Origin: Macrostomum lignano
Lineage: Eukaryota
Length of the DNA: 64,000 bases
Assembly: GCA_002269645.1 (NCBI GenBank)
Contig: NIVC01001522.1
Coordinates: 1 to 64,000, forward strand
Direction of reading: 5' to 3'
Position numbers and translations under genes: made by a program. The notes below the pieces were generated by a model that did not search any database, was not told where the DNA came from, and saw only the letters and a list, made by a program, of their open reading frames with translations. Each line of letters opens with the position of its first letter. Positions within the stretch are counted from its first letter, which is position 1. This document shows, piece by piece, positions 436-62,619 of the stretch.

Positions 436-2023
436 ATGAACGATTCGTCTAGCGGTCGCCTGAGCTACAATTTTGACACATTTTCGTACCTGCTGGTCGA
501 CTGCAGAAGCGGCTTAGAGCCTTGAGGGCTGGCTGCATCACCGCCACAATTAGCGGCATTTTCTGTGCGTTTATCTCGCCATTTCTTGCCTGCCTCAGTT
601 TCTTTGGCAACGGCCTGACTGGCTACTTGGCCCTGTTTAAGTGGCGCCATTGACCAGACAGAATGCTTTCTACGGTTGCGTTGCTCTTGTCGACTGCGTT
701 ACGGTGCCGCTGTTGGGCATGCTTCACGGCTTCTTGAACCGCGGCCTGCCCTGGATCTCGGGTGGTCGCTGGGTTTTCTGTTGAGCAATCGCGGAGAAAT
801 TGGTTGTAAAGCTCATTGGATAATTGGCAGTCTGTGTCAGCTACTGCCCGCTATGCTGCTGTTGGTGATGGTGACAGACAGGCTGCTGGCCTTTCTGATG
901 CCCATGAGGCTTCAACAGGTGGGGTCTGGCATTGCTTTCAGGTAAGATCCAGAATTTACTTGCTTATCAGACTTGAGGCGCTCCTATGCAGTTACGGAGC
1001 TGTCATTTAATGACCCTTTTGTGACAGTGTGTCTTACTTGTACTCTCGTGCAAGTATGACCTGATGGTTGCAAATTTGTCATGCAGTAAGTAGTTCATAG
1101 CTTTAGTGATGAATTGCTTGGTTGACTAGTTTTCTTGATTGTCAAGTTGCTTGGTTGTCGAGCTGTTTGGTTGTGGAGTTGCTTGGTTGTCGATTTGTTT
1201 GGTTGTGGAGTTGCTTGTTGTCGATTTGTTTGGTTGTGGAGTTGCTTGGTTGTCGATTTGTTTGGTTGTGGAGTTGATTGGTTGTCGATTTGTTTTTTGT
1301 CGAGTTGCTAGTTTACTTTGTTTTCGACATGCTTTATTGCTAACGAGTTTCTTGATCGATCAGTTTCTTGGGTTGCGACTCGATTAAAGATTAACGATCA
1401 AACACTACTTCGTGCACTTTGTACAGAATATTTATTCACTGTGCAATCGGTCTGTACACAGGTCAGTACTAGCCGCCACACTGGTCACCCTGGGCCTCAC
1501 CGTTCCTCGACTTCTCCTGGTAACACGTTACGCCATTTTTGACGGCGTCGGCTTTTTCAGCATTGTGTGTTACTTCGCTCCCAGTCAGCACAACTTTGCG
1601 CTCACGTACGACACTTTGTTTATCTCTCCACCAACCATCCCTCTGCTGTTGGTGCTGTTGTGCAACGTGGCTCTATTGATCAGGATTGCTAGACTAGCCG
1701 CTAAAAGGCGTCATTTATCGAATAATACTGCTACCGAATCTGGCGTCGACCGGCAGAGTCTAAGCAGTGCGACTATTGTCATGGCGATGTCGTGTGTCAC
1801 GCTGGGGTTCAACTTGCCGCTGTTAGCCGTCGAGTGGGCAGTGCAGTTGGTGACGAAGTATACGGCAGACCGTCAGGCTGGCATTCGGACTGCCCGAATG
1901 CTGAGCAACTTTATTTTCAGCCTGAAGCAGCTGGCCATGACAGGTCAGGCTGTCAATTGGATCATTCTGATGGCCAGGTGTAAGAAATATCGTCAGGCTG
2001 TCCGAGAGATGATGCCGTGGTGA
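436..2023 (+). pseudogene. Class A (rhodopsin-like) GPCR, 2 exons (436-941, 1462-2023), with three apparent -1 frameshifts in exon 1 (pseudogene or assembly error)
   Basis: ATG 436 gives MNDSS (N-glycosylation sequon). TM1 ISPFLACLSFFGNGL, TM2 ALVDCVTVPLL..RGLPW, and TM3 GCK...VTDRLLA (DRY-like) lie in successive frames. Intron 942-1461 is GT..AG with phase-2 join AG|G. Exon 2 encodes TM4-7 and ends CKKYRQAVREMMPW*. Confidence 0.75.
1140..1300. repeat. Degenerate GT-rich repeat in GPCR intron
   Basis: Repeated gttgcttggttgtcgatttgtttggttgtgga-like units. Confidence 0.7.
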
Positions 2024-2652
2024 CTGATTCAGAGAGAGGTGGAAATACCATTTGGTTACAGAAAAATTGGATGAAAACTTAAAAACACGATTATTACTAA
2101 CTATTTTCCAACTCAAATCCGAGTTGTACTTTTCGATTCCCAATGCCCACCTACAAAATAAGGGCATGCATGCCCAACTTTTAAGATGTCCACCTTCTTC
2201 AAGAAATAGACAAAATACCCAAAACTCTTAACAAAAAAGAACTTGGCTTTGTTTTATTGTCTCATTGGTATCGATGAGAATTCTAGCCTCCTTGACTCAA
2301 TTATGATGATGAATGAGTCTAAAAAAATATATATATATATATAATCGGAATTGACTGCATTCTTCAAAACAGCGGTAGTTCTGCCTAAATGTTTTCTGCA
2401 TTTTAGAGCAATACTTAGCCATGAGAGTCCTAGAGCGCCTACCTAACTGATTTGCACTTTTAATTTGACAAAAGGCACCGCGGACACTGCAAGACATGTA
2501 GCTCGTAAATGTCTGCAGGAACTCCAAGTTTTGAGACAGAAAGTTTGCCATGCCAGATCGAACTGGAGTTTCAGAGCTCTCCTGCGCAGAGCGCACCAGG
2601 GGATCCAATTATCTGCGGTGCAGTTTTCACGCCGAAATTGCGCTATAAAAGC

Positions 2653-4593
2653 ATGCAGTTCGGCCTTGGAAGAACAGTTTGTCTGTATTGGTTCAACTAT
2701 TCAAGAAACTTTAAATGGCAGTCAACAAGCAATTCTTTTTGTGTGCTTTTGTTGTTGCTTTCGGCATCGACCTCGTTAAGCGGTGGAGGCGGCGGTTCCA
2801 GTACAGGTAGTACCGGTGCCAATAGTAGCACTGGCGGCGACCACGGAGGCGGTCACAGTACCGGTATCAAGGTGGCTGACTGGCACTGGGACAGCGTCAA
2901 GGTGTACATAGTGATCTCCCTGTTCATCGTGGTGGTTTCCATTCTGAAGGCGCTGTTCCACCACATCCACTGGCTGTCCGAACTCGTGCCCGAGTCAATT
3001 GTGCTCATCTTCTTGGGCGTAGGCATCGGGATCATTGTGTTCTTCACCGTATACTCGGATACCGAGCGCTACTACTGGGACCTAACGCCCAGCCTCTTCT
3101 TCTACATCCTCCTACCGCCAATCATGCTCGAAGCTGCCTATTCGCTCTACGATCGAAACTTCGGCGAGAACCTCGGCTCGATTTTGTACTTCGCCGTGGT
3201 TGGCACAGTTTTCGCATTTTTCATCATCGGCTTCGCTCTGTACGGCCTGAGTGCCGCCGGGGCGATGGGCGCCCTGCGAGTGTCGCTCAAGACCTGCCTG
3301 CTGTTCGGCTCGTACATCGTGGCCGTCGATCCAGTCGCTGTGCTGGCCATCTTCCAGGACGTCGGAGTTGAGCAGGGTCTCTACTATCTGGTGTTCGGCG
3401 AGTCGCTACTGAACGACGCTGTGACAGTGGTTCTCTACAAGACCATGAACGCTTTCATGCCCCTGGAAACTGCTAGCGGCTCAGATATCTTGTTGGGCAT
3501 TGTCAGCTTCTTCACCATCAGTCTGGGCGGTCTGCTTATTGGCGTGATCTGCGGCATCATCTGCTGTTTCATCACTCGATTTACCTTCAGCGAGCGGGTT
3601 GTGGAGCCCCTAGTCATGCTGTCGGTGGCTTACCTGAGCTACATGATCGCGGACATGGTTGGCTGGTCCGGCCTCATCGCCATCATCAGCTGCGGCATCG
3701 TGCAAGCCGCCTACGCGTTTCACAATGTGTCGAGAAAGTCTCTGATTACAATTAAGTACTTCACTAAAATGGTTGCCAGCGTTAGCGAGTCCATCATCTT
3801 TGTCTACCTGGGCATCGAGCTGGTGAAGAAGACTCACGTCTGGCACTGGGGCTTCGCTCTGTGGTCTCTGGCGCTCTGCCTCGCTGCTCGATTCATCATC
3901 ACTTTCGTGTCCAGCGCCGCTCTGAACCGGCTCGGCAGGAAGACGCCCATCAGCCTCACTGAGCAGCTCATCATCTCGTTCGGCGGCCTCCGAGGTGCCG
4001 TCGCATTTGCATTGGCCACCCTAGTCGAGAATAAGGACCTGTTGAAGGCTGATGGCGATCCGTTGATGCGCGAACGGCTCCTGACCACAACTCTGTTCAT
4101 CATCATGTTCACCTGCATTATCGTCGGAGTGATCATCAAGCCGCTGGTCAAGTGTCTCCACATCCGGCTGCGCAAGCGTCCTCTGACCAGCGTCTTCCAC
4201 GAGGTGGTGACGCACACCGTCGACCATCTGAATGCCGGCATCGAGGGAATCTGCGGCAGACGCGGCGACTACCGGATGCGCGAGTGCTTCGACCGACTCG
4301 ATAGTCGGATCTTCCGCCGGATTCTGCAGCGCGATCCGCGCACCCAGACAGAGAAGATTGTCGATGTGTACCGCAAAGTAGCTCTGAAGATGCACTACGC
4401 CAGCCTGGAGACCGACCAGAAGAAGTCCACGCACCACTTGTCCGCCCTGGCTCCCGGCCTCGCCCGACGTGTCGCCTCCGTGGCCTCGATGCAGGACCTC
4501 GGCGGAGCCGGTCCGTCGTTCCCTGACCTGACTGCGCTTGGCGCATCAACTGGCAATATTTCCTCGATGGTCCGAGCGAGGTTCGCCGCGTGA
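2653..4593 (+). CDS. SLC9A: Na+/H+ exchanger (CPA1/SLC9A, plasma-membrane NHE type), intronless
   Basis: Contains FFYILLPPIMLEAAY, AVDPVAVLAIF, FGESLLNDAVTVVLY and FGGLRGAVAFAL motifs, plus a CHP-binding-like DHLNAGIEGICG. First in-frame ATG is 2653, followed by a hydrophobic leader. The C-tail may continue past the stop via a frameshift. Confidence 0.93.
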   Translation: MQFGLGRTVCLYWFNYSRNFKWQSTSNSFCVLLLLLSASTSLSGGGGGSSTGSTGANSSTGGDHGGGHSTGIKVADWHWDSVKVYIVISLFIVVVSILKALFHHIHWLSELVPESIVLIFLGVGIGIIVFFTVYSDTERYYWDLTPSLFFYILLPPIMLEAAYSLYDRNFGENLGSILYFAVVGTVFAFFIIGFALYGLSAAGAMGALRVSLKTCLLFGSYIVAVDPVAVLAIFQDVGVEQGLYYLVFGESLLNDAVTVVLYKTMNAFMPLETASGSDILLGIVSFFTISLGGLLIGVICGIICCFITRFTFSERVVEPLVMLSVAYLSYMIADMVGWSGLIAIISCGIVQAAYAFHNVSRKSLITIKYFTKMVASVSESIIFVYLGIELVKKTHVWHWGFALWSLALCLAARFIITFVSSAALNRLGRKTPISLTEQLIISFGGLRGAVAFALATLVENKDLLKADGDPLMRERLLTTTLFIIMFTCIIVGVIIKPLVKCLHIRLRKRPLTSVFHEVVTHTVDHLNAGIEGICGRRGDYRMRECFDRLDSRIFRRILQRDPRTQTEKIVDVYRKVALKMHYASLETDQKKSTHHLSALAPGLARRVASVASMQDLGGAGPSFPDLTALGASTGNISSMVRARFAA

Positions 4594-5954
4594 TCGATCA
4601 TCAGGCGCGCCGCGCCTCCGCCCAGGTGCACGCCGGCCTGACGAAGTCGTTGAACTCGGACGCGGACATGACGCGAAGGCTGCACGACATGCAATCCAGG
4701 CTGGCCAGGGGCATCCGGCTGCTGCACCGCGGCGCGTCCAGGGCCACCGGCTGGACCGGCTGGGCGACGGGCCGACGGAAGCGGCGGCAGTTCGGCGAAC
4801 GTTCGCGAGTCGCCCGGCGTCTTCCAGCGTCGAACCTCGGAGTCGCCGGCGCAGCACGAGTTGAGCCTCCAGCAGCATCAGCATCGACAGCAGCCAGCCA
4901 TCGGCCTGGGAGCCGTTCAGTTTGCCATCGGCGAAGGCCCCAGCAGCGACGCCCAATCGGACGGCACAGCTCGACGGAGTCACGTGAACAGCGGCTTCAG
5001 CTCGAAGGAGAACACCGCCATCTAGCCTTGCTGGTCGCTGAGTTGCGTCGCCCACCAAGAATGAATGTGTCCACAAGACTAAAATTTCTTTTCCTAGCGG
5101 AGTGTGACGCGGACACAAAAAGTTATATCACGTCATCTAATCGCATCGAAAAAATTGATAAAAACATGTGGTCAGCCGATTCGAATTCCCTGTATTATCT
5201 ACATATGTAGTACGATATTCTGCTCGTGTAGCTTAGATTTTGTAACGTAGTGGTTCCATCCCTTACAGCAATGGCACCTTTATGGCAATATTGTTAACCA
5301 TATTGCTGAAGTTTTTCCAAATAATATGATTGTATAAAGAAATATTCCCAATTACAACCGAGTAGCTCATAGAATCCTTGCTTTCTAGAAATTATTTTGA
5401 TATTGCGCGTTAATTATTACGATTTTAATACCTCACTGAAGTTCGCTGATGAGCTGACTCTTACGAGCTGTTTTACCAGTAAAAGCCCTCGCTTTAAAAA
5501 AATTACAAGTTCATGAGAATTCCGTCAAATCAAAAGACGCACTGGAACGCGTTGGACATGGACTTCCTTAAGCCAACTTTCTCATTATAACAAATTCATA
5601 GAACGGAAGCATTGAGGTCACGCATCCACTCACTTTACCTGTCCAAAACTGTGTGTTCTTCGTTAATTAAATTAGCTTTTTATGCCCTGCTATGTTTTAT
5701 TCCATAGCCCTAGCCTGGGCTTAGCTATCTGATTTATTAATTAGTTTGCAGCGATGTGCCTCGCTAAACGACGGAGTTGTCTCTAGGTGGAAATGAAAAA
5801 CTGTGAGTGAGGCATCGGCAGTGGGCTGAGAAAATTAGCAGAAAAATGAGTAATACAAAATATTGTAGAAGGGAGACTAGAAGTAAGAGTAAAAGAAAGA
5901 GTTTTCAGAAATCTTCAGAAGTTTTCAGAAGTTTTCAAAAATCTAATTTTCAGA

Positions 5955-20815: not shown

Positions 20816-21029
20816 TGAAGAGCGCTGAGAAGAGACACGAATCTTGAGCTGTCGGATTAATATTGTGAAGTTTCCAAGGACCCGAGGGCCGGATAGTGAG
20901 ACTGCGAGCCGGAGTTGTCTGAGTCCTGATCTAAGCACTTAGGTAGCTTTAATTCAAGATGTCTTAGCAGCCAATGTGCAGTGTAAGTAAGGATCTGTAC
21001 CTGCATTTTCATCTGCATGCACGACCTTC

Positions 21030-24144
<3,115 letters not shown>

Positions 24145-28338: not shown

Positions 28339-30534
<2,196 letters not shown>

Positions 30535-34370: not shown

Positions 34371-34376
34371 TTTATT
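34371..34376 (-). terminator. Polyadenylation signal of the micro-exon gene
   Basis: AATAAA ~100 nt after the TGA. Confidence 0.5.
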
Positions 34377-34474: not shown

Positions 34475-35919
34475 TCAGCCGCGGACTACCGGCAGTGGAG
34501 CTGCGGATAACGGAGTGTCATGCACAAAGTCTGTTGCTGTCTATCATATATAAAATTAACTGCTTTAGCACTTACTTCCAAATCCAGCACCTGGCGGAGA
34601 AGTCGGCTCTTCGTTCATGGCTGCGGATTATTTGGCAATGTGAATTCGGTGGAAACGGATTATCTACGCTTGATAGGCCTCGAAGTTCGGATTCAATTCA
34701 GCATGAATGTCAGAAACCTTTCATACTCGTGGTTTGCTCTTAGAAACTCACCATTTCCTCCGTACGGCACAACAGGGATAGAAGTTGGCGGCTCTTCGCT
34801 TGCTGTAAGAATGTAGTCAATAAATCCAATTGTCAAAAACTAACGTGTTGAAAACATGTGCTAAACACTTTATTGTTCAGTAACAACTTAAAAAATCAGC
34901 TTCGAGAAACTCACGACTTCCGAATCCTGGGAAAGAAGTTGGCGGCTCTTCGCTGGCTGTAAGCAAGTTAATCAATGCAATTGTCAAAAACTAACGTGTT
35001 AAAAACATGTTAGAACACTTTATTGTTCAGTAACAACTTCAAAAATCAGTTCCGATAAACTTACGACTTCCGAAGCCTGGGAAAGAAGTTGGCGGCTCTT
35101 CGCTGGCTGTAAGCAAGTCAATCAATGCAATTGTCAAAAACATATTACAGTTAGCAAACTTCACAACTAGTAAGATACTTTCATAACGTTTTAGAACACT
35201 TGATTGTTCAGGAAAAAACTGTGAACCTCAGCTCTAAAGAAACTCACGGATTCCGACGCCTGGGATGAACGGTGGCGGCGCATTGCTAGCTGTAATTAAG
35301 TAGTGATTAGGTCCAATCGTCAAAACAGCTTTGCATGTTAAAAACGCATGATTGTTAAGGAACAGCTAAGAATATCAGCTTCGAAAGACTTACCGATTCC
35401 GATGTCTGGGGAATAAGTTGGCGGCTCGTCGCTGGCTGCAAGTATAATAAGTCAATAAATATAATTGTCAAAATAACTTTATAACGTTTTAGAACACTTG
35501 ATTGTTTAGGAGCAACTATAAAACTTAGCTCCAAAGAAACTCACGGATTCCGACGCCTGGGATGAACGGTGGTGGGGCTTCGCTGGCTGTAAAGAAGGCG
35601 TCAATTAATTGTCAAATCACTTATATGCATCTTTATAGCTAGGAAGAATACTGTCAAATTTCTGAGCCACTCACCCGGAGCCTCACCAGTTGGCATCGGA
35701 GGAGGCATTGGAGGCTCGGAGCTTCCGGAACCGGAACTGCCGGAGTCAGCAACTGCGGGTTATAAAAATTCATTTATTCCAAAGGTCAGTTTCAGTCAAC
35801 AATAAGTCGAGGCGTGTTAACTTACATCTGGGTTTGTATACTGGGATGGCGCTAACGCTGCAGCACAGCACCAGACCCAACAAGACGGCTCCGAGAGTAG
35901 CTTTGCTCAGGATAGACAT
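34475..35919 (-). CDS. Micro-exon gene: secreted 167-aa Pro/Gly-rich repeat protein, 10 exons
   Basis: Exons 35919-35826 (94 nt), 35752-35675 (78), 35586-35545, 35435-35394, 35289-35248, 35106-35065, 34956-34915 (42 each), 34802-34752 (51), 34620-34576 (45), 34500-34475. All nine introns are GT-AG and phase 1. The spliced ORF is 504 nt and stop-free, beginning with signal peptide MSILSKATLGAVLLGLVLCCSVSA. Confidence 0.9.
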
Positions 35920-36012: not shown

Positions 36013-36019
36013 TTATATA
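36013..36019 (-). promoter_or_regulatory. TATA box of the micro-exon gene
   Basis: TATATAA on the minus strand ~95 nt upstream of the ATG. An Inr-like TCACTT lies ~30 nt downstream of it. Confidence 0.6.
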
Positions 36020-36479: not shown

Positions 36480-36934
<455 letters not shown>

Positions 36935-37745: not shown

Positions 37746-39579
37746 ATGCGGATGTGCATGTGTGAACTGCTTTTTATACTCGCTCGAATTTCAGTGAAAA
37801 ACGTTCTGAGCGTCAAACGCTTCAATCGATTCGTCACCAGCAGCTCCGTTGAGCTGATTGATTCTGTGATCAGCTTGTTCGTCAATAACGATGTCGCTCA
37901 GGAAAGTCATTGCCTGCTGCTGTGCCAGCTCAGAGGCTGCGCTGTCGTCGAGCTGAACAAGACCGCCAGAGTCTGTCGGACAGTCAGCATCAACAATGAG
38001 TCATTGGGGCAGCCCGCCGGTCCAAACGGAAGTCACGTGACGATACAGCTCGGCTCGCCCGACGATAGCGCTGTGACTTTGTGGAAAGCGGAAGAGTTTG
38101 ACCAAAACCTTATGAGTTTGACGTCAGCTGAAGTGCTGCTGAGAAGTGAGTCACGAGATATGGAATTGTTTGAAAATGTCTGTGCGACAATTGTTGCAGT
38201 CAAAGCTTCATCATAAACTCCCACAGACAGCAGCTCGGGCAGAAACGGATCGATCGAAACCTTCACGGCTCCCGCTAGCGGCTGCTACCTCATTGAGGCA
38301 GCCGGTGCCAGAGGAGGCAACAACGCCCTGATGAACTTCGGAGGCCCCGGAGCCCAGGTGAGCGCCAGAGTCAACCTGACGGCCGGCACCCAGCTGAGCA
38401 TCGTTGTGGGCCAGACAGGCGGCTCGACCTCCCTGAGCAGCGAAGGAGGCGGCGGAGGCGGCGGCAGCTTCGTGTACCGGACGAACGACCAGCTGCTGCT
38501 GCTGGCTGCCGGCGGGGGCGGTGGCGCCGGTATAGGACACGATGGTGAGCAAGAATGTTTCTCGAACTTTTAAGGAGGCAGGTTTTTTTGATAAATTAGT
38601 CCAATAAGCCATATTTATTTAAAAGCCTGTCCCATTTGTTTGAATGCTTAATAACTGCAGCTTAAAAAAAATTCATTTCGTTACTGTCAATGAGCAAAGC
38701 ATGATAAAAAAGATTCATAAAATTAATGAATCAAGTTGTGCCATTTTTTATGATGTTTAGGCACAGGACGTAAACAAAAGGCTCTAAGAATATCAATAGA
38801 GCTATACAAAAGGAAGGCAAGACATATCAATAATAAGATGAACATTGGATCTGCCTGCCATTCAAAGCATTAATAAATTTTGTGCTGATAGCATGAAAAC
38901 ATGCAGCTCTTATCTCCGTAATGTATATATTTTCGGTAAAAACTGGACTGTCTGATAAAAACTTTCCAAAACCGTATTATAGTTTGATATTGATATGTCG
39001 GTATAACTAATTGTGGTTTCTACAGGGCATTAAGTTTCCGTAACTATTGTGCATCGTGCTATAATAGTTCTCTGTACGATAGTAATACAAAAAACTGCAG
39101 GAAGGCCAGGACAAGTGGGAACTAACGGCTCGGACAGCATCGGAGCTGAGAACAACAAAGGCTTCGGCGGCATCAACGGCCAGCCGGGCTCCAACAATCC
39201 GAGTGGCACCCCATCAAACTCTGACCACGGAGGCTGCGGCGCCGGCTGGCTTGGCAGGGCAGTCAACCCTAGGCGGAGCTCCTGGGATGGCGAACGAGGC
39301 GGCAGTCGGGCCCAAGGCTGGGTCGGCGGCAGCGCCGGTGGTGGCAGCGCCTGCCACGGCGGCTTCGGCGGCGGCGGCGGCTGCGGCTGCATGCGCGGCT
39401 CGATCAAAGGCGCTGCTGGCGGAGGCAGAGGCTTCAGTGGCGGCGGCGCGGGTGTCGGCCGCAGTCACATCGGCGGCGGCGGTGGCTCCTTCTGCCTGGA
39501 CGGCTGCGTCTCCAGCAGCAGCTGCACTGGCGATCAGGGCTTCGTGTCCGTCAGGTTCGCATCAACCAGCTGCGGCTGA
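37746..39579 (+). CDS. Secreted protein with PAN/apple-like N-terminus and ALK/LTK-type glycine-rich domain, 3 exons
   Basis: Exons 37746-38145, 38227-38544, 39101-39579, with phase-1 joins. Motifs ETFTAPASGCYLIEAAGARGG, SIVVGQTG, GGGGGGSFVY, LLLAAGGGGG and GGGGSF are typical of the ALK/LTK glycine-rich domain. C-x3-C-x4-C (HCLLLCQLRGC) is PAN-like. No TM or kinase domain. Confidence 0.8.
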
Positions 39580-41631: not shown

Positions 41632-44006
41632 AGCCATTATGTCTTTCAATATAAGCCAAAGCTTTGAAAAGCTTGTTCAAAAATAGAATAATTTTGTACT
41701 TCAATTTTAATACTTTGTGTTATATCTTGCTCAAGTTTAAACTTATGCAATTTGATACTTAAATATTAAATTATAGTTGAAAAATGTAACTAAAAATAAT
41801 TTTTTATCTAAAGTTCTAAATAAAAGTATACTAAAAAACTATCATATTTATAAAAATTGACCTTTTTGCCATTTTTACAATATATTGCTTTACTATTTAT
41901 ACTTTTTTCATTGAAAATTCAAATGAAATATTGCAGGTTTATAGGTAACTTTTAAATGCAATGGTATATTACATGGGGTACATTATATACATTTATAATA
42001 TTATTACATAGAATAACTTATATATACATAGAATAAAAAGCAAATATATATTAGATAAAAGAAAAAATACAAGTTATCTTTGAAAAAAAAACTTAAAAAA
42101 TGTTTATTATCTAAAACATTCTTCTTATATTTTGTTAGGATGATAGGGTATAGAGTAATAGCAAACTATGTTATCTTTTGCATAGAAGTGGCTTTTAAAA
42201 AAAACTATAATGTACAAGATACAAAGAGGCCTCTATTTTTGTATTTTTTTAAAATGGAAATTTCTAGCATGAAAAGTCATTTCTAGAATAAAATATAAAG
42301 CTAATATAATAAACTATTTTTTAAATTAGATATGCTAGAGAATTAACAAAATTCTCATTGATATTGTTTTTATTTTTTCAAAAGGTTAGCTTTGCCTTTG
42401 TTGTCCCTAGAAAAAAATAACTTAAAATGTTAAATTATATTTGCAACAAAGCATTTGTTGTAGCCAAATTGTAAAAAAATGTTTTTTTATAATCCTATTT
42501 ATATTTTAAATCTAGGTCTAATTTTTAAACATTGTTGCAAAGGTTTTTGGTTATTCTAGTTATATTAGTGGATTATTTTAGATGTTTGTTGTTTTCTATC
42601 TTGAGTATCATTAGTCTTTTAGTTTCTTACTACTTTGGCTCTATATATAACTTTGATAATCACTGAGAGCTAAATAACTGAGGTAGCAGATTCAACTGAC
42701 TTCTTGATGATGCAAATCACTTGATAGTAACTTACAGATTGTTGTGTTTGATAGTCACAATCTCTAGATATTGTCTTAAAACATATTAATAACATAAAAA
42801 GATAGTATTCCAAATAAGAAGCTCAATTGGCTCAATTTACAATGGGTTCAAAATATTCAGGAGAACCAAAGGTTTAGTCTATTATGGGAAAGGGTTGGTT
42901 GTCAATTTGTATTCAGTGGGTCAATTTATTAGCTTTGGTAATAAGGTTGAGACTAGAGGTTGGACGGGATTGAAATCTTTGGGTGGGATCGGAATCGGGA
43001 ATAATTTTTTTCTTGGGATCGGGATTGGGATTGGGATTCAGGAATCAGGATCAGGTCTTTTAGTGTATTGTCCATGTAAAGTTAAACAAAATTGAGAAAA
43101 GATTGTCAAGATGAAGAAGTAAAACACAACAAAATTGATATGAAGTTTTGTAACCAACAAAGTAAATAATGTAACGAGTACAAGTTAAAGCAAAATACCT
43201 TCAAGTAATCACTAATTCTATAAATTATTAATCGAAAGACCTAATCGAAAAATACTAAAAAGTAACTTTCAAAATTTCACTTGAGTCCCTATCAATTGAC
43301 CTAGTATAAAGAGTTTTTGTATGGGTATAGTGATAGAACTTTTTGAAGCAATACAAATACTTTGATAGATGGCAATCAAATTTAATGTTCAAATAACACT
43401 TGAGTCAAATTGGCAATATTCATGACAATTGATAGAGGCTAACTTTTGTTTAAATTTGCATTTATTTACTAGGCTGGCATGGCAATAGGTGGTACATAAA
43501 AAATTACAGAATAAAGCTAATGATAGCTCCAGCCTAGCTAGAAGCAGAAGATATACATAGGGAAGGTAGCAAACCAATATATTAGCCAAAGGTGATAAAT
43601 GCATAAGGAGTGATTTTAAGAATGCTAAGAAACATTATTTGCACTTACATTTTCATAAGTATTGTTACTAATATTTATTTCTAAGTATACCCTTCATTCA
43701 TCTACATTGTATCACAGCAAGAGTAATACTAACTTAAAATATGCAGTAATATAAATCTGTAGCTAAGAACTAAGTATACAAATTTGCTATCAAGTGTCTG
43801 TAAGAAGCCCATCAAGGGACTGTCAATAGACTGCCAGGGGATACTTATTGTTGAAGAGATATCAGAAAATATAAGAAATCCTTTATCAAATCTATTTATT
43901 TGACCTATATTCTAAGTCCTGAAAATATTTGAGATCTTGAACTAGTTTTTCTTGTCATTAATTTTTTCCCATCATTTCTTATTCCCAACAACCTCTTCTC
44001 CTCTAG

Positions 44007-47000
44007 ATCCTCTAGATGACATCCTGAGCGACCTGCGCACAGATGAGCTTGGCACCGACTTTGACCTAATGTCAGGCGTGATACCAGATCACGATCCACT
44101 GCTCGATGATACATTTGTCCAGCAGATCATGGGCGAGTTTGACCAATTCAATGGCGTGCTGGACCAGCCTCTGGAGCAGCAACAACAGCAGCAGCAGCCA
44201 GCATTGCTAAAAGCTGAACCTGTCCATCAACAAAAGTTCAACGTTCTCGAGTCTTTGTTGCGCAATCCAACCTCCGGACCCGTGGTGACACCCGCTCCGC
44301 CTGCCGTGACAACCACGCCGTGTGCTGTCAGTTCAACCACTTCCACAGCAGTTGCCTCTCAGTCCGCTGCTAACCAGTCTGTCACGGCCACTGATAAACT
44401 CATCGCCTTGCTGTTGCAACAGCGCGAGGACACAGCCAAGCGCGAAGATCTCATTGCTAAATTAGTACGCCAAGTCTGCCAGGAGCAGCAACAGTTGAAG
44501 CAGCACAGGCCCGGACCACAAGCAGAGCAGCTAGCCGCTGCTTTTAGAGAACTTTCCACCGCTCAGTTGGAACAATTGGCTAGTGGTAGTTTGCAACTTG
44601 TATTGCCAAATGCTAATAATACTACTGTTACTACTACTGCCGCTAATCATCCTGCGGTTTCTTTGGCGCCAATTCAAAATCCCGGTCATGTGTCAACTGT
44701 GCATCAGCAGCAGCAGCAGCAGCCGACTGTGACTGCAGCTAATTTTAAAGTGAGTTTTTCTTTTATTGTAAAGTTATAGTTGAGAATTTTTAGTATATAA
44801 GACTGGCATCGCAGCAGTTCAGATTTGCTGTGTCTTCGGGGGTGTCTCAGCTGAGATCTGCTGTGTCTTCAGGGGTGTCTCAGATGAGATCTGCTGTGTC
44901 TTCAGGTGTCTCAGATGAGATTTGCTGTGTCTTCAGGGGTGTCTCAGATGAGATCTGCTTTGTCTTCAGGGGTGTCTCAGCTGAGATCTGCTGTGTCTTC
45001 AGGGGTGTCTCAGCTGAAATCTGCTGTGTCTTCAGGGGTGTCTCAGCTGAGATCTGCTGTGTCTTCAGGGGTGTCTCAGATGAGATCTGCTGTGTCTTCA
45101 GTAGTGTCTCAGATGAGATCTACTGTGTCTTCGGTGGTGTCTCAGATGAGATCTGCTTTGTCTTCAGGGGTGTCTCAGATGAGATCTGCTGTGTCTTCAG
45201 GGGTGTCTCAGCTGAGATCTGCTGTGTCTTCAGGGGTGTCTCAGCTGAAATCTGCTGTGTCTTCAGGGGTGTCTCAGCTGGAATCTGCTGTGTCTTCAGG
45301 GGTGTCTCAAGTCGTCATTCGCAATTCTCATGCGCCCGAAATTCTCACCCGCAGCTGGAGCGGCTGACCCCGCCTCTGTCAGTCTCCCCACCGAAGGCGT
45401 CGCCACCGTCGCTGCCGCTTCAGCAGCACATTGTTCAGCAGCAGCAGCAGCAGCAAAAGCAGCACACTCGAGTTGCTGAACCTCCAGCCCCGACCTTTGA
45501 GGACAACGAGGATGATGATGAGGAAGACGAGGAGATGCTGGTCGATCAGGATGTCGGCGGCGGCGTCAGCGGCTCGACCAACCGACGCTCTGGCGGCGGC
45601 AGCGGCGGTCGAAAATCTTCGCACACCGTCATCGAGAAGAAGTACAGGCAGAGCATTAATAACAAGATTGACGAGCTGCGCAGGATGCTGGTTGGGCGTG
45701 ATGGCAAGGTGCGTTTTGTAAAATTAGTCATTTGCTGCTATTTACACCTCTTCATTACTCTCATTGATTGCCCTTCTGATTACCCTCTCTGATTACTCTT
45801 TCCCCTTATTCATTACCTTCTCTGATTACCCTCTCCCCTTATTCATTACCCTCTCCCCTTATTCATTACCCTCTCCTCTTATTCATTACCCTCTCCCCTT
45901 ATTCATTACCCTTTCCCCTTATTCATTACCCTCTCCCCTTATTCATTACCCTTTCCCCTTATTCATTACCCTCTCCCCTTATTCATTACCCTTTCCCCTT
46001 ATTCAGTACCCTCTCCCCTTATTCATTACCCTCTCCCCTTATTCATTACCCTTTCCCCTTATTCAGTACCCTCTCCCCTTATTCATTACCCTTTCCCCTT
46101 ATTCATTACCCTTTCCCCTTATTCATTACCCTCTCCTCTTATTCATTACCCTTTCCCCTTATTCATTACCCTCTCCCCTTATTCAGTACCCTCTCCCCCT
46201 ATTCATTACCCTCTCCCCTTATTCATTACCCTCTCCCCTTATTCAGTACCCTCTTCCCTAATTCATTATCCACTCCGAGAGTGCAATAGCAGGCGAATCC
46301 ACAAACTACAATTGTGTTTTAGTAAACAATTTAAATAAACTTTTTTTGGTTTAACCAGTGTTTCATAAGCAACAGGGTTGGGTTTAATTACAAAAGAAAT
46401 GATTATATTAGTTAATCTATATACATAGGCTATGCCACTGAGTGTGATAGGGAAATGTTACTGCAATAAATTAACCATCGCAGTGTATAACATTACAGGT
46501 AAGCAAAGGGCAGGATTAGGTACCCATCCGCCTGTCAGAGAGGAAAGGAAATCGGGAGTAAAATGATTTATGACCCTTCTTCTTTCCTGCACTGGATGCA
46601 AGGTTCTGAGACAAGGAGTGCTAAAATTTGCTGGTGTCCAACTGCTTTATTAATATTTGGTAAACGGCAGGAGTAACTATCACTGTATTATTAGGTCTAT
46701 ATGCCTCGTCATCTAATTACTCATAGTACTACGTCCGTATTTTTTGGGTGGTTGTTTCTGCGACTTACCTTGGCTGGGCCCCCTTTTGCCAAGATATTGC
46801 GCATGTAATGGGCATGTACACACTCTCAGTGACTTGGGGGTTGGCCCTCCAATCCAGACTACGTCCTAGAACTCCATGAGTCGGGCAAGATAGCGGCTTG
46901 CTGATCAAAGCAGATCCTCTTCGGAATCCGCGCCAGGCGCACATGAAGAAGTGTTTCGCCTGTCAGAAATGACAGAGTGCTTCAAGCTTGTCAGGGACGT

Positions 47001-50000
47001 CTGGATTGTCTGGATTAGAAACCCAAGCCCAAGCAATAACCGAAAAAAGGTTCATGAGGTGGAAGTTCCGATTGGTTGTTAAAGTCAAGGCCGATGCGAA
47101 CTGAGGCTTATATATGCGATATGCAAGCAAGTTGTAACATTTTTCTACCTCTGCATTTCCCAACCCTCGCATTGCAGCTAAGCAAGAGTCTGGTGCTGAA
47201 GCGCACTATCGATCGTATTCACCTGTTGGAGCGCGAGAATGAAAGCTTGCGACGACAATTGGGCCAGCAACAGCATAGTAACGGGTCTGGTTACTACATC
47301 CATGAGCGAGGTAAATGTTATTGGCTTTATTTAATCATTATTACCCAAGTCTCCAATGCCATCACATTACCCAAGTCTCCAATGCGATCACATTACCCAA
47401 GTCTCCAATGCCATCACATTACCCAAGTCTCCAATGCGATCACATTACCCAAGTCTCCAATGCCATCACATTACCCAAGTCTCCAATGCGATCACATTAC
47501 CCAAGTCTCCAATGCCATCACATTACCCAAGTCTCCAATGCCATCACATTACCCAAGTCTCCAATGCCATCACATTACCCAAGTCTCCAATGCAATCACC
47601 CACACCCGCAGACTCCTCTCTCTCAGCCGGCGGCCTGTCACCCGGCGCATTCGAAGACGTGGTCAGCAGCGGCAGCAGCAATCACAACAGTAGCGCTGGC
47701 AATGGCACAGACTCGCCAACCAGTTTGCCTAGCCCATCTTCTTCCGGCGGTAACCATGGCAACAATGCTATCGGAGTTGGTTCCACTCTGGTACAATTGT
47801 TGCAGCAGTCGGGAGTGACTACTGCTACAGTTACTAGCGGCAGTAGTATGCAACAGCCATCTACAGCAGTTCGCTGCACTATGATGCTTGCCGCTTGCTG
47901 TTTTCTGTTTCTGCTTAATCCGCTGCAGCTGGGCGCCGTCTGGCTCAGCGGCGGTGTCGGCGCCGGTGTCGGCTTATCTGGCTCCGCGTCTGGTCGAGCA
48001 TTGAAAAGTGTGGATTTAGTAAAAGAAGAAGACAACGGCTGGAGCAGCTCTGTGTGGTGGTGGCTGACCACTCTGGTGAACTGTTTGATTCTGTTGTGCT
48101 TGGGCTGCCGCTATAGCCCGTTGCCAAGCACTGTGAGTCGGTCGGAGGATCCGAAGCGACACGCCGCACGCCTGCTGGCATTCGAACGGTGCTGCAGCCT
48201 TGCAGACTCGGATATTCGAGCTGGCAGCTGGGATCGAGCTTGGTCCAGGCTGCGCACCTGTCTCGTGCTGCTTCATCGGCCTCTGCCCGTGGCTGGCAGT
48301 TTTGATTGGATGGCCCAGATGGGCTGGCATCTGGTGCTGGCCGCCTGCCTGCAGATCTGCTCTCTGGTGAGTCTGGGTTAGTGCAGCATTACCTACCGCT
48401 TTGTTGGTATTACCTACCGCTTTGTTAGCATTACCTACCGCTTTGTTGGCATTACCTACCGCTTTGTTAGCATTACCTACCGCTTTGTTGGCATTACCTA
48501 CCGCTTTGTTAGCATTACCTACCGCTTTGTTAGCATTACCTACCGCTTTGTTGGTATTACCTACCGCTTTGTTGGTATTACCTACCGCTTTGTTGGTATT
48601 ACCTACCGCTTTGTTGGTATTACCTACCGCTTTGTTAGTATTACCTACCGCTTTGTTGGTATTACCTACCGCTTTGTTAGCATTACCTACCGCTTTGTTA
48701 GTATTACCAATATACACCATTTTACCAACAGATTACCAATCTAAGCTACACCATTCTACCAACAGATTAGCAATCTAAGCTACACCATTCTACCAACAGA
48801 TTAGCAATCTAAGCTACACCATTCTACCAACAGATTAGCAATCTCTTATTGCCTCATCCCCTCCTCGCCTTAATCCAGTTCCGGCTAGCCCTGCCAGTGT
48901 CAGAGCAGCAGCGCCATCTGGCAGCCCTGGCCTCTCTAACATACGGCCGCCTGCTCCAACTGACCATCGGCATTGGCGATACCGACAGACACAGAAGCGA
49001 TTGCACGGTGAGCCGGTGGCAACTCCGAGTCCTACTACTCAACTGTAATAACTTTCTAAACCTAGCTGGTAGCAGTGCCGATACTGTCCTACCGATTGGC
49101 GAACGAATCCGTCTGCTAGCGTCAATGGGACTGGCCGCCAGGCGGGTAGGCCTGCCCGCTTGCATAGCTAAACAGTTCTATGATGGAGCTGCTATGCTGG
49201 CCTCTGCTACTGCTGCTAATAATACTAATAGTAGTAGCGGCAGTCTGAGCTGGATGGCCACACCGCAGGGCGCCGCCTTCCTGGCCGAGTACCGTCCGGG
49301 AGGTCCGCTGCCGATGTCTCACAGGCTTGACGATACCGTCTATTCGTCAAGCGGTTGTCCAGCCAAACCGTTGGACCGGGCTCGGTCTGTGTTTGTGGAA
49401 AGCCTGCTAGAAGCTTCGGTTGAGGATTTGGTTTTGTCAGCTTCGTTGGCTACTTCAAACTGCTGCATCGCTGATACCACTAGACTGTGCCAGGTGGGCT
49501 AATTAATTACCACTGCAAATTTTGATAGCTCTGTGGTGCCTTTAATGCCTCCCAGGTCCTCAGTTGCTGGGCCAGCCTTCCAGATCCTCAGTTGCTGGGC
49601 CACCAGCCTCCCAGATCCTCAGTTGCTGGGCCACCAGCCTCCCAGATCCACAGTTGCTGGGCCACCAGCCTCCCAGATTCTGCGATTCACAGTTGCATAT
49701 AAAGACCTGTTAAAAAAACCTAAGCAAATTGCTTTAAAATCTATTTTTAGATTCGAAAAATATAATACATTGAGGTCCCGAGTTTGAATCCAATTTTCCC
49801 ATTCAATCCATCCCATATCGCAGGATCTTTTCGCCGGCCGCGACCCGGAGTCCTGCTGGTGGGCCGCCACCGCCCGCCTAGCCGCCGCCTGGCGCAACGG
49901 GGACAACGCCGAAGCCGCCTCGATGACGCCGGCGCCGCTGCCGGCCGGTTTGAAGGCCGACAGACTGGCCGCCTCGCTGACGCTGGCGGCGCGCGCCTAC

Positions 50001-57452: not shown

Positions 57453-60400
57453 CTACAGGCGAGTTCCGCAGATAGCAGCAGATCCTCCGGTGAGGTCCAG
57501 TGCTGGTGCCAGTGACCCCTGCTGCTGCTGCTGCAGCTGTTCCTGCTTAACATTGACGCCGAATGCCTGGGGCGCGGTGGTGACGGCCGCGGCGTGGCAC
57601 TGCATCGACAGACGATGCAGCAGGTGCTGATGCTGCTGGTGCATCATCGTCGGAGCCGAGCTCTCCGAGGCGGCGGCGGCGGCGGCAGCTGCAGCGACTG
57701 CCGCTACAGCCGAAGAAGCTCCGGCAGCGGAGGAGCTGTCCTCGTTGTAGTCCGGATATTCGTTGCTGTTGCTGCCCGCGGCCGCGGCGGCAGACCGAGT
57801 GCCAGTCGATCTGCTTTGCAGCTTCTTGCGCTTCATTCGACGGTTTTGGAACCAAACTTTCACCTGCCCGGGAATTGCGATTGGGAAACTCGGATGGGGA
57901 TAATTTGTTAAAACTATTCATAGATGCCACTGGAATCATCTGGAAATCCCCATGAAATCTCCCTGAAATCCTTGTGAAATCTCTCTGAAATCCTTCTGAA
58001 ATCTCCCTGAAATCCTTCTGAAATCTCCCTGAAATCCTTCTGAAATCTCCCTGAAATCTCCCTGAAATCCTTCTGAAATCTCCCTGAAATCCTTCTGAAA
58101 TCCTTCTGAAATCTCTCTGAAATCCTTCTGAAATCTCCCTGAAATTCTTCTGAAATCTCCCTGAAATCCTTCTGAAATCTCCCTGAAATCCTTCTGAAAT
58201 CTCCCTGAAATCCTTCTGAAATCCTTCTGAAATCTCTCTGAAATCCTTCTGAAATCTCCCTGAAATTCTTCTGAAATCTCCCTGAAATCCTTCTGAAATC
58301 TCTCTGAAATCCTTCTGAAATCTCCCTGAAATCCTTCTGAAATCTCCCTGAAATCCTTCTGAAATCTCCCTGAAATCCTTCTGAAATCTCCCTGAAATCT
58401 CCCTGAAATCCTTCCGAAATCTCCCTGAAATCTCCCTGAAATCCTTCTGAAATCTCCCTGAAATCCTTCTGAAATCTCCCTGAAATTCTTCTGAAATCTC
58501 CCTGAAATCCTTCTGAAATCTCCCTGAAATCCTTCTGAAATCTCCCTGAAATCCTTCTGAAATCTCCCTGAAATCCTTCTGAAATCTCCCTAAAATCCTT
58601 CTGAAATCTCCCTGAAATCCTTCTGAAATCTCCCTGAAATCCTTCTGAAATCTCCCTGAAATCTCCCTGAAATCTCTCTGAAATCTCCCTGAAATCCTTC
58701 TGAAATCTCCCTGAAATCCTCCTGAAATCTCCCTGAAATCCTCCTGAAATCTCCCTGAAATCCTTCTGAAATCTCCCTGAAATTCATCTGAAATCTCCCT
58801 GAAATCCTCCTGAAATCTCCCTGAAATTCATCTGAAATCTCCCTGAAATCCTTCTGAAATCTCCCTGAAATTCATCTGAAATCTCCCTGAAATCTTCCTG
58901 AAATCTCCCTGAAATCCTCCTAAAATCTCCCTGAAATATTCCTAAGATCTCACTGAAGTCTCCCTGAAATATTCCTAAGATCTCACTGAAATATCCCTGA
59001 AGTCTCCCTGAAATATTCATAAGATCTCATTGAAATCTCCCTGACGTCTCTCTGGAATCTCTCTAAAATCTTCCCGTTATCTCTTTTAATTAAATCCCAC
59101 CGAAATCCCGATCAATCATCCGATGTGATATTAAAATCGCAAGAAATCTAAACCAACCTGTCTCTCAGTGAGATGCAGCTGGCAGGAAATCTCCCAACGT
59201 TTCTGTCGAGTAATGTAAGCATTGCTGACGAATTCCCGTTCCAGCATGGCCGTCTGGTACCTTGTGTACGGCTTGCGCTTCTTTCGGCTGCGAACTGAAC
59301 GAGGGCGAATTGAGTTTTTTTGCTTAGTGATCATACTACTGACAAGCATTGAACGATAAGTAGTATAATAGTGATATAGTAATAAATGTTTATTAGAATG
59401 AAATTCTTCAAAAGATAAGCATTCTTCCCACAGGATGGGATCTTCAATTTGAGGGGTTCTACCCACGGGATGGGATCTTCAATTTAAGGGGTTCTACCCA
59501 TAGGATGGGATCTTCAATTTGAGGGGTTCTACCCACAGGATGGGATCTTCAATTTAAGGGGTTCTACCCATAGGATGGGATCTTCAATTTAAGGGGTTCT
59601 ACCCATAGGATGGGATCTTCACTTTGAGGGGTTCTACTCATAGGATGGGATCTTCACTTTGAGGGGTTCTACCCATAAGATGGGATCTTCAATTTGAGGA
59701 TTATTCCCACAGGATGGGATTTACAATTTGAGGATTCTTTCCACAAGATGGGATCTTCAGTTTGAGGATTCTTTCCCACAGGATGGGATCTTCAATTCGA
59801 GGATTCTTCCCACAGGATGGGATCTTCAATTTGAGGATTCTTCCCACAGGATGGGATCTTCAATTTGAGGATTCTTCCCACAGGACGGATGTTCAATTTG
59901 AGGATTCTTCCCACAGGACGGATGTTCAATTTGAGGATTCTTCCCACAGGATGGGATCTTGAAATTGAATTTGAGGATTATTCAATAGTCTAATTCTAAA
60001 CTCAATCTCACTCACCTGAACTAATGCACTCGGAATCGTCTGAAGCCAGCAATTGCTGCTGCTGCTGTTGCACTGTCTCATCTTCATGCTGATGCTGGTG
60101 ATGATGGGCCGCCGCTGCCGCCGCCGCCGCTGCCGCTGCAGCAGCCGCCGCGGCAGCCGCCGCTGACGACCTGGGTGGCAGCATGATATCATGGGCCGCG
60201 GGTCCGAACATGCTGGCATAGGGATTCGATTGGTGGCTGGCTCGGCTCATGTAGAGCTCCGAGTGTCTGCTCAAATGGGAGTAACAGAATGAAGAGTAAA
60301 GTCAGGTGGAGAGTCAGAAAACAAAGAGTCGGACAGAGTGAATAGAGTTAAGCGAGATAAAAATCCCTACCTTTGCTGCTGCGAATTTGGCGAAAATCCT

Positions 60401-61077
60401 TGCAGATGTTGGTGCTGAGCCTGCTGGCTATTGTTGCTATTGCTACTGTTGTTATTGGAGAAGCCGGTCACGTGACTGAACGCAAAGTCCGCGCATTGCA
60501 TCTGGGCCATGCTGACACTGACAGACGATGGACTGGCGAATGCGGCATAGCAGCCGTGCGACGGAGGCGGCGGACTGACGGACTTAACTGGGCCTCCAAA
60601 ACCGTAATGCTGAGGATGAAGCTGGTGGTGGCCCTGGTGCAGATGCTGCTGCTGCTGCTGTTGGTGATGCATAGGAGTGTCCGTGATGCCGTAGCCATGA
60701 TGCGGCGCCGGCGGTGGTGGCCAAGTGTAGGCAGCCCGAGTGTCCTGCTGCGTTGGATAGCCGGCAAACAGGCCAGTTGGTGTAGCGTGCGACTCCATCA
60801 CGGCCATTGTTTTCCAATAATTATTGTTTTTCCAGCTATTAATTGTATAATCGTAGTAATATCTATTGTTATTCGTGTCTGCTGAATGCTCTTCTTTGTC
60901 GCTTGAAGTTGTTGATACTGCAGAATTGGTGTTATCGGTTTCGCTATTCCGAACCTGTGAATAGTCATAGTCATGATCATAATAGTACTCATAGTTGCAC
61001 CTGTCCGCGGCGTACTGTCGTCGATTGAAACTGTCCTGTTGTTGTACTTCCGATAAGGCTTGGCTAGCTTTCTGCAT
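57453..61077 (-). CDS. Post2: Posterior Hox protein Post2, 4 exons
   Basis: Exons 61077-60371, 60266-60016, 59294-59158, 57863-57453, phase-compatible. Homeodomain RKKRKPYTRYQTAMLEREFVSNAYITRQKRWEISCQLHLTERQ|VKVWFQNRRMKRKKL carries the spiralian Post2 signature. Confidence 0.93.
57950..59070. repeat. 22-bp minisatellite in the Post2 homeobox intron
   Basis: (ctgaaatctccctgaaatcctt)n. Confidence 0.95.
59420..59960. repeat. 34-35-bp minisatellite in Post2 intron 2
   Basis: cccacaggatgggatcttcaatttgaggattctt units. Confidence 0.9.
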
Positions 61078-62619
61078 TCTCAATATTTATCTTATCTTGG
61101 CTTAAATGAATATTAAATATTATCAAACTGATCCTTCGTAGATAACGATCACGATAGAAAGCTAATATAGATTTCCAGTGAAATGATTAAAATTTACAGC
61201 TTAATAGGTTTGCAATTGACTTTATCTTTTTTAAACTTCTTGCAATAACAAGGCCCTACTATTTTAGAACTGTGGTTCTATTTTAGATTCTCCCCCCCCC
61301 CGGCTGTACTAATATAAGGCTCGGTTTTGGGTGGGTGTAGATGTGGGGCTGGATTGTCTGGGCTTTGATTGGGGTTGGAGGTTACGCGTCTGGGAGGGGT
61401 CTGGCTGGCTGGAGAGGGAAGGAAATTCGACCGCGTTTGGCCTTTCCTTAGTCGTAAACAACGCAACCACCCTTTTAAGCGGGCAATCGATCGACCTTGA
61501 ACTTTCCTCAAAACCTTCCTCTAATCTTATTTAATTTAAGACTTATTTAAGTCTCAGTTAATTACAAACCCAATTAAGCCAAAGCAAGGCCCGTTACAAT
61601 TCAAGTAAGCTAAATAGAATGAATTAAGTTATACTCTTATTAGCTGAATAGTTTTTGAAGCCGTTTAATTGTTTTGAAAGTATATGTTTTTTAAATTAAA
61701 ACTACGAAATAAATAGCTACTGAATATTTATTTTTAAAGTCCAAAGTGCAAAAATATAACGCTTCATTTAACACTATGCGACAAACTTTGGCAAATTTTC
61801 CTGTGGTCGTAACATGCTACTTTATTGCAGTAGAGTAGTACGATTTATACAACAGTTTCACCTTGAAAGTCTCGGCGGAAAATCCAAGGCTTTTGGGATT
61901 TCTTTTCTTGGGGGATGAGACCGGGGAGGGCAGAAAAGGGAATAGATAGGATGGGATGGAGAGAACGCTGCGCAGCTGGCATAGGGTAATAAATGCGGCA
62001 TTAAAAATACTGGCTGCGCAGCGCAGGGCTCCGTATGCCGGGCCATTTCAGCCTTCCCAACCCCCCAAGCCGGAGGTTCGTCCCACCGAACGACATTTTG
62101 CGCGCGAGGCGGTCGTAAAAACATTTCTGCCTTTTCTGCTTTCGCAGCTTTTCTTAGAGCAGGGCCATGCAGGGGCCTCTCTGCTTCTAGGGGAGATATG
62201 GAGAGCTAGCGAGTCGCGATGAAGTCAGGGAAGAGTTGCGGAACGGAAGAGATAGGGGAGGAAGTGAGGGAGACTTCCTCTTTCCGCAGTTTGGGATTAA
62301 TTCCCCCTCTCTCAAGAAGAAGCGAAGGAATTGGGTCTTTCTGACATTTTTGCAGCGCCGATTATTCATGATTTTCAAACTTCCATACGGTTCAATCTTT
62401 TTCATCGGTTGCTTGAAGTTGAAGATTTCTCCGTTTGTCAATTCGATTAAACCTATTTTTATGCAATAAGCTATTTGACAGATTAGATAGAGTGAAATTG
62501 TATTTATAACAGTGATTAGGTTGCAATAGCAAGTCAAAATTAGGAGACGACCAAGCCTTAAGTTCAGTTGAACCCATGAACTCTTTACAAGCGGACTCAC
62601 AGTGTGAGCTGACCAGCTG

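Follow-up and report, generated by a model that had tools for sequence, protein, structure and literature searches.

The 64-kb window of Macrostomum lignano DNA analysed here (positions 1 to 64,000 of contig NIVC01001522.1) contains, on its minus strand at 35919-34475, a locus that is probably a real gene for a secreted protein and that is apparently unannotated. A sequence-only reading of the window had described this locus as a hidden micro-exon gene, in which what looks like a satellite of ~150 bp is an array of short symmetric exons lying between a signal-peptide exon and a short stop exon. With its exons located by ten exon strings, the minus-strand interval splits into 10 exons (94, 78, 42, 42, 42, 42, 42, 51, 45, and 26 nt for E1 to E10) and 9 introns (73, 88, 109, 104, 141, 108, 112, 131, and 75 nt), and this model is the same as the earlier description at all the coordinates given there. 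All 9 introns open with GT[AG]AGT, close with [CT]AG, and are in phase 1, i.e., they split a codon after its first base, while all 8 internal exons (E2 to E9) are phase 1-1 and have lengths that are multiples of 3. The spliced coding sequence (CDS) is 504 nt long, ends in TGA, and encodes a 167-aa peptide identical to the one proposed earlier. The ten-exon model with its phase 1-1 symmetry is thus borne out by the exact exon/intron match, the nine consensus introns, and the single open frame.

Gene model and predicted product

The gene model is flanked, as had been claimed, by a TATA box and a polyadenylation signal. On the minus strand, TATATAA is found at 36013-36019, 94 to 100 nt upstream of the ATG, and no other ATG was found between it and the start codon. 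The coding part of exon 1 (35826-35919; 94 nt) contains the ATG, the signal-peptide-like sequence MSILSKATLGAVLLGLVLCCSVSA, and then IPVYKPR, and it ends at a GTAAGT donor. Exon 2 (35675-35752; 78 nt) encodes FADSGSSGSGSSEPPMPPPMPTGEAP. It is followed by five 42-nt exons, which are exon 3 (35545-35586), encoding (A)SEAPPPFIPGVGI, exon 4 (35394-35435), encoding (P)SDEPPTYSPDIGI, exon 5 (35248-35289), encoding (A)SNAPPPFIPGVGI, and exons 6 (35065-35106) and 7 (34915-34956), both encoding (P)SEEPPTSFPGFGS. Exon 8 (34752-34802; 51 nt) encodes (P)SEEPPTSIPVVPYGGN; the repeat array includes its first 28 nt, and its 3' end is unique. Exon 9 (34576-34620; 45 nt) encodes (A)MNEEPTSPPGAGFG, and the coding part of exon 10 (34475-34500; 26 nt) encodes (T)PLPVVRG, followed by TGA at 34477-34475. 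The signal AATAAA lies at 34371-34376, 99 nt downstream of the stop codon.

Several properties of the locus point to a gene. The minus strand of the window contains 33 GTRAGT sites, which is approximately the number expected from base composition; 9 of these 33 fall within the 1.45 kb of the locus, where ~0.75 would be expected, a 12-fold local excess. When both strands of the window were searched for chains of AG-[3n nt]-GTRAGT units, only the locus and one 46-bp minisatellite were found. The exons are 53 to 69% GC and the introns 28 to 43% GC. Retention of any of the 9 introns gives an in-frame stop within 4 to 25 codons, while the exons contain no stops, and no credible competing open reading frame (ORF) was found on the plus strand of the locus. 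The splice consensus is shared with a sideroflexin gene in the same window (e.g., CAG|GTGAGT and ...TTCCAG|). The parts of the locus that are not repeated (E1, I1, E2, the 3' end of E8, I8, E9, I9, and E10) independently carry gene signals, namely the ATG, the signal peptide, four more consensus introns of the same phase, the stop, the TATA box, and AATAAA. Agreement of synonymous codon choice with the neighbouring genes is +0.11 for the proposed frame, compared with -0.06 and 0.00 for the other two, which is weak evidence in a region of skewed composition.

The first exon had been said to code for a signal peptide, and by hand rules residues 1 to 24 do resemble one, with a single Lys (K6) in the n-region, a hydrophobic core of 14 residues (mean Kyte-Doolittle value of 2.65 over the core window, residues 11 to 21), and V-S-A at positions -3 to -1. 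The precursor is predicted to be cleaved after VSA(24), before I25, which would leave a mature chain of 143 aa and 14.3 kDa, with a pI of ~4.05 and a net charge of -12. This chain is 27% Pro, 13% Ser, and 13% Gly, contains 12 Glu, 3 Asp, 1 Lys, 2 Arg, and 0 Cys; S-x-E motifs occur in it five times, and N-glycosylation sequons are absent. The product consists of about eight units of 14 to 17 aa, one per exon, of the type S-E-E-P-P-T-S-F-P-G-F-G-S-P. Its composition is that of a chain predicted to be intrinsically disordered, the PTS-like stretches suggest O-glycosylation, and the presence of five S-x-E motifs suggests that a secretory-pathway kinase phosphorylates it. The 14-kDa, acidic, Cys-free protein would be secreted by means of the exon 1 signal peptide and may belong to a gland or epithelial secretion as a small component resembling a mucin or a phosphoprotein.

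Database searches with the product gave no matches. The spliced product has no match at an E value of ≤0.01, not even to itself, among 5.8 billion protein clusters that include schistosome, other trematode, and cestode proteomes, and it has none in Pfam (E ≤ 10) or among PDB sequences (E ≤ 10). Its peptide strings were not found in the full-text literature.

Origin of the exon array and mode of splicing

The middle of the locus is a tandem array in which exons and introns are repeated together. Tandem Repeats Finder (TRF) reports 34775-35141, with a period of 150, 2.4 copies, and 90% matches, and blastn shows that the array is wider (35616-34775), with ~5.5 units that are 68 to 75% identical. 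The array at 34775-35616 thus comprises ~5.5 exon-plus-intron cassettes of ~150 bp; it begins within intron 2, 30 nt before exon 3, and ends 28 nt into exon 8. The copies correspond to exons 3 to 7 and the start of exon 8. Since the homology runs through exons and introns alike, we conclude from the alignment that the array has grown through the repeated duplication, in tandem, of a cassette of ~150 bp that consists of one exon and one intron, as the earlier description had supposed. Events of this kind have also filled a third of the window with minisatellites.

Judging by their similarity, the youngest duplicates are E6 and E7, in the middle of the array, which agree at 41/42 nt; E3 and E5 are 88% identical, and E4 is 79 to 81% identical to E6 and E7. 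The most diverged and, on this basis, oldest copies are at the edges, E2 and E9. At the protein level, E9 (NEEPTSPPGAGFG) looks like an older, diverged copy of the unit, and so does the second half of E2 (SEPPMPPPMPTGEAP). No paralogues were found elsewhere in the 64-kb window by tblastn or blastn, which detected the locus itself and otherwise low-complexity noise, and the exon 6 to 8 consensus has 0 matches in JGI metagenome contigs. A 20-nt intronic block, CTGAACAATMAAGTGTTCTA, which is an imperfect palindrome (GAACA-N6-TGTTC), recurs on the minus strand in introns 3 to 7, ~35 nt downstream of each donor (35509-35490, 35360-35341, 35211-35192, 35030-35011, and 34880-34861), and its conservation equals that of the exons. 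It may act as a splicing enhancer or a protein-binding site, or form a small hairpin.

The pattern of change among the copies was examined in an alignment of five units, the five 42-nt exons with their introns. None of the 42 exon columns is gapped, compared with 56 of 120 intron columns, and 24/42 exon columns and 32/64 ungapped intron columns are invariant. The donor GT-AGT and the acceptor CAG are invariant in all copies, and approximately half of all columns are invariant overall. Between E6 and E7 there is 1 difference in the 42 nt of exon and there are 13 in 108 nt of intron, plus 2 indels. The only changes in exon length in the whole gene are +9 and +3 nt. The copies hold their frame, their exon length, and their splice signals, and their amino acid sequence drifts or diversifies freely. 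This pattern is suggestive rather than proof of constraint, because so few independent events are involved. The same pattern is reported in fast-evolving secreted repeat proteins, including the products of micro-exon genes (MEGs).

All 9 donors match U1 perfectly at positions +1 to +6, and every intron retains YTNAY branch-point-like motifs. The stretch TTTTTGACAATTG plus ATTGACT, which is of this kind, lies 12 to 35 nt upstream of the acceptors of exons 5 to 8 (between 34827 and 35325 on the minus strand), with variants before exons 3 and 4, and is probably the branch-point region. Short introns with strong donors are an intron-definition setting, in which the exons are normally all included, the introns are removed singly, and skipping is rare. 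The short introns, perfect donors, and branch-point-like motifs of the locus therefore favour constitutive splicing. Constitutive splicing, accompanied by variation in the number of units, is in our judgement the most likely mode, ahead of combinatorial skipping. All exons would then be included by intron definition, variation would arise mainly through the number of units and through substitutions, and in-frame skipping of exons would be possible and optional.

The sequence-only reading had made more of this last possibility. Its statement that skipping any combination of the 8 internal exons preserves the frame holds formally, as every possible junction is a sense codon (for T, P, A, S, or F). 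By analogy with schistosomes, the locus would then be a MEG-type generator of diversity, in which combinatorial skipping of 8 symmetric exons could give up to 2^8 = 256 in-frame isoforms and a varied pool of secreted proteins, as has been suggested for the MEGs of schistosomes. Together with the uniform phase 1-1 of the internal exons and their exclusively sense junction codons, such skipping is favoured by the fact that the locus passes an operational MEG filter (Olson et al. 2020; see below), by the shortness of 42-nt exons for exon definition, and by the fast, mainly nonsynonymous divergence of the units, which recalls the accelerated evolution reported for MEGs. However, the introns argue against it, since they are only 73 to 141 nt long, their GTRAGT donors are perfect, and their branch-point-like motifs are conserved; the introns of schistosome MEGs are far longer (0.2 to 5 kb), and even in schistosomes skipping can be minor, as for meg-8.2, of which 1 of 10 cDNA clones lacks an exon. 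We consider skipping on this scale unlikely, and likewise the pool of variant proteins that would result from it.

Several observations weigh against the conclusion that the locus is a gene for a secreted protein at all. Across the repeat exons, two reading frames out of three are open. The exact product sequence is absent from a 15-billion-protein collection, which includes some M. lignano ML2 predictions (P0001, P0178, and P0207). The signal peptide was assigned by hand rules rather than by a trained predictor, and since there is no homologue, Pfam match, or PDB match, function is judged from composition alone. Pairwise identity of the exons (69 to 98%) is not above that of the introns (66 to 88%), and the exon changes are mostly nonsynonymous, a pattern of substitution that is also expected of an unconstrained young array.

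One explanation that would accommodate these observations is that the locus is non-functional, either because the splice-like and coding-like features of a unit that arose by chance were copied in a 150-bp repeat or because the array is young or decaying and is neither expressed nor selected. Copies of a repeat are not independent observations, and tandem arrays form very easily in this genome (they cover 33% of the window); the similar identity of exons and introns, the mainly nonsynonymous changes, and the failure of the homologue search fit this explanation as well. It is harder to reconcile with the start, signal peptide, same-phase introns, stop, TATA box, and AATAAA in the parts that are not repeated, with indels that are confined to introns (apart from the +9 and +3 nt changes in exon length), with the sharp GC contrast between exons and introns, and with the fact that every intron is closed by stops and every exon open. 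On balance, a non-functional locus appears very unlikely.

That exons 3 to 8 are instead a Dscam-type mutually exclusive cluster, with docking/selector pairing and one 14-aa unit per transcript, is scarcely credible: the exons are indeed tandem, duplicated, and equal in length and phase, and CACTTGTCAAAAA in the 5' untranslated region (35980-35968) is complementary at 12/13 positions to the intronic TTTTTGACAATTG before exons 5 to 8 (selector-like sites ~30 nt upstream of the acceptors, at 35325-35314, 35140-35128, 34990-34978, and 34839-34827), but the same 12/13 match is reached by 19 of 200 dinucleotide shuffles and is not significant, so that complementarity beyond chance, by which a docking-selector system would be recognised, was not found; the duplex is also short and A-U rich, the TTTTTGACAATTG motif fits a branch-point region equally well, and with introns long enough for splicing and exons of 3n nt nothing forces exclusivity.

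Neighbouring genes and repeats in the window

Tandem repeats make up 33 arrays and 21.4 kb, or 33%, of the window and are mostly minisatellites of 16 to 63 bp in or between the exons of ordinary genes. For comparison, simple and tandem repeats make up 15% of the M. lignano genome. The largest microsatellites are (TAGT)~550 at 28339-30534 and (GTTA)~114 at 36480-36934, the second of which is 460 nt upstream of the TATA box of the locus. Rfam and tRNA scans of the 64-kb window were empty.

A Na+/H+ exchanger gene at 2509-5022 (plus strand; Pfam PF00999, E = 3.5e-74) is nearly intronless. Its ORF at 2509-4593 matches mainly flatworm proteins and also other spiralian and arthropod proteins, all at 41 to 51%. 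The 100% match, P0001, is the UniParc-only entry UPI0007A2E7ED, which differs at one residue and at the C terminus, and these differences suggest another assembly or another gene copy. A sideroflexin-5-like gene at 21027-24141 (plus strand) has at least 4 exons. The M. lignano protein A0A1I8HZJ3 (P0178, UniRef100, UPI0007A1C903) maps to 21027-21125, 23094-23213, and 24061-24141 at 95 to 100% and has a stretch of ~70 identical amino acids in common with the large sideroflexin exon; this UniProt model is frameshifted and misnamed "SET domain-containing protein." The UniParc numbers of the sideroflexin match (UPI0007A1C903) and the exchanger match (UPI0007A2E7ED) are close together. The sideroflexin match places the window in M. 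lignano or a near-identical strain, with which its tandem-repeat load agrees. Intron 1 of the sideroflexin gene is filled by a (TAC)158 microsatellite (21136-21611), and a 46-bp minisatellite (22069-22469) begins directly at the end of its exon 2.

An SREBP-like basic helix-loop-helix (bHLH) gene at 43952-49502 (plus strand) was recognised by eye from HTVIEKKYRQSINNKIDELRRML and has a Pfam HLH match (E = 3.8e-6). A 33-bp minisatellite (3n) at 44821-45309, which may be intronic or coding, is open and shares the frame of the ORF that runs into the bHLH exon. A fragment of a homeobox gene, KVWFQNRRMKRKK, which was also recognised by eye and has no Pfam match at an E value of ≤0.01, lies on the minus strand together with an upstream Gln/His-rich ORF (57453-57863 and 60367-61083), and minisatellites of 22 to 35 bp at 57943-59968 are located between the two. 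There is also an Srw-like G-protein-coupled receptor fragment at 1412-2023 (plus strand). A glycine-rich ORF of 176 aa at 39049-39579 (plus strand), with GGGGSF and GGFGGGGGCGC runs, has no match in Pfam or among PDB sequences; as a candidate ALK-like domain it was rejected for want of support from either.

Relation to micro-exon genes and to genes for secreted proteins

The claim that the locus is MEG-like holds in one respect and fails in others. Under the operational definition of Olson et al. 2020 (PMC7653826), a MEG has 7 exons or more, and at least half of them are micro-exons (<70 nt and divisible by 3), with a run of at least 4 micro-exons. The locus passes this filter, since it has 10 exons, 7 of which are micro-exons (42 nt in five cases, 51 nt, and 45 nt) that form one consecutive run of 7 (E3 to E9). 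In the original description of schistosome MEGs (Berriman 2009 and DeMarco 2010, as summarised in passages of PMC5825161 and PMC4350168), ~80% of the coding region is in symmetric exons of 6 to 36 bp and a signal peptide is present, the product being secreted or membrane anchored. Protein variants made by micro-exon skipping and expression in glands or outward-facing epithelia also belong to that description. The locus has the signal peptide of that description, by hand rules, but it has no exon of ≤36 bp, and its symmetric 42- to 51-nt exons make up 306/504 nt, or 61%, of the CDS, which rises to 76% if the 78-nt exon is counted. Its exons do fall inside the wider micro-exon range of 3 to 81 bp used by Nedvedova et al. 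No homology to the described MEG families was found at an E value of ≤0.01 in the 5.8 billion clusters, and there is no Pfam match.

Like the MEGs of Schistosoma mansoni and its relatives (MEG-1 to MEG-35), the locus combines a signal-peptide first exon with short symmetric exons and a short stop exon, and its product is small, of low complexity, probably disordered, and, here by prediction, secreted. Some schistosome MEG products are mucin-like and O-glycosylated. Further likenesses are that both are lineage restricted, have no detectable homologues, diverge fast and nonsynonymously, and are hard for gene finders. In contrast to the schistosome genes, the exons of the locus are 42 to 51 nt (one is 78 nt) rather than 6 to 36 bp and account for 61% (76% with E2) rather than ~80% of the CDS, its introns are 73 to 141 nt rather than the 0.2 to 5 kb of S. 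mansoni, and its micro-exons are recent tandem copies, introns included, so that the product is a plain repeat protein; the locus has no sequence similarity to any MEG, and its host is free-living. Like the cestode MEGs of Hymenolepis microstoma and Echinococcus multilocularis (Olson et al. 2020), it has all three structural features of the operational definition, and many cestode MEGs are also repetitive (PMC7653826). It differs from these in that it shares no motif or homology with them, there is no tandem gene family in the window, and its lineage is not neodermatan. A free-living source had been anticipated in the sequence-only reading, and indeed M. lignano is a free-living marine macrostomorph, to whose UniProt protein the sideroflexin exons in the window are 95 to 100% identical.

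Comparable architectures are known from other animals. The "bicycle" effector genes of aphids (Korgaonkar 2021; Stern and Han 2022) resemble the locus in having many small internal exons of one phase and a secreted product, and in being fast evolving and recognised by gene structure rather than by sequence. Unlike the locus, they are phase 2, encode CYC motifs, have ~17 exons on average, and belong to insects and to plant parasitism, and there is no homology between the two. It is rare for a gene to have many exons of similar size that are all in one phase (Stern and Han 2022).

Vertebrate tropoelastin and the SCPP/casein proteins are also secreted, disordered, and rich in Pro/Gly or S-x-E repeats, and they are encoded by small cassette exons of one phase that are duplicated and can be skipped in frame. 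PGVG and PGFG motifs are reminiscent of elastin, and S-E-E resembles the sites in caseins that are used by the Golgi kinase. These lineages are unrelated and without homology to the locus, elastin is large and Lys-crosslinked, and the introns of SCPP genes are phase 0. The analogy is one of composition and architecture only.

MEG organisation has been counted as one of the genomic gains made by the parasitic Neodermata (Laumer et al.), a proposal qualified by the possibility that it is older, and MEGs have been described as restricted to platyhelminths (Philippsen et al. 2015). No report of a MEG in Macrostomum was found in the searchable literature. The locus is thus of a structural kind that is already known, in a lineage in which that kind had not been described. 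The significance of this is moderate, because a single locus without homology to parasite MEGs also fits convergence, which on the sequences can be argued at least as well as common origin.

The presence in a free-living macrostomorph of a gene that passes the MEG filter would indicate that this architecture can arise without host immune pressure, and it suggests a simple route by which it may do so, the tandem duplication of a phase-1 exon and its intron in a genome prone to minisatellites. It would also have practical consequences, since tandem-repeat masking before annotation can hide such genes and catalogues of the M. lignano secretome may be incomplete. The earlier prediction that annotation or masking would be likely to miss the gene agrees with the absence of its product from a collection that contains some ML2 predictions and with the fact that TRF masking, which was used for the Mlig_3_7 assembly, would cover E6 to E8.

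It is quite unlikely, though of considerable consequence, that MEG architecture is not an invention of the parasites and that M. lignano has a bona fide MEG-type gene and, by implication, a family of them under TRF-masked "satellites," with such a gene arising through tandem duplication of exon-plus-intron cassettes and giving multiple in-frame isoforms of a gland secretion. If this were true, the origin of MEGs would be moved to before the Neodermata, and the locus would offer a laboratory model for the birth and splicing of micro-exon arrays in an early-branching, free-living rhabditophoran that is tractable to transgenesis.

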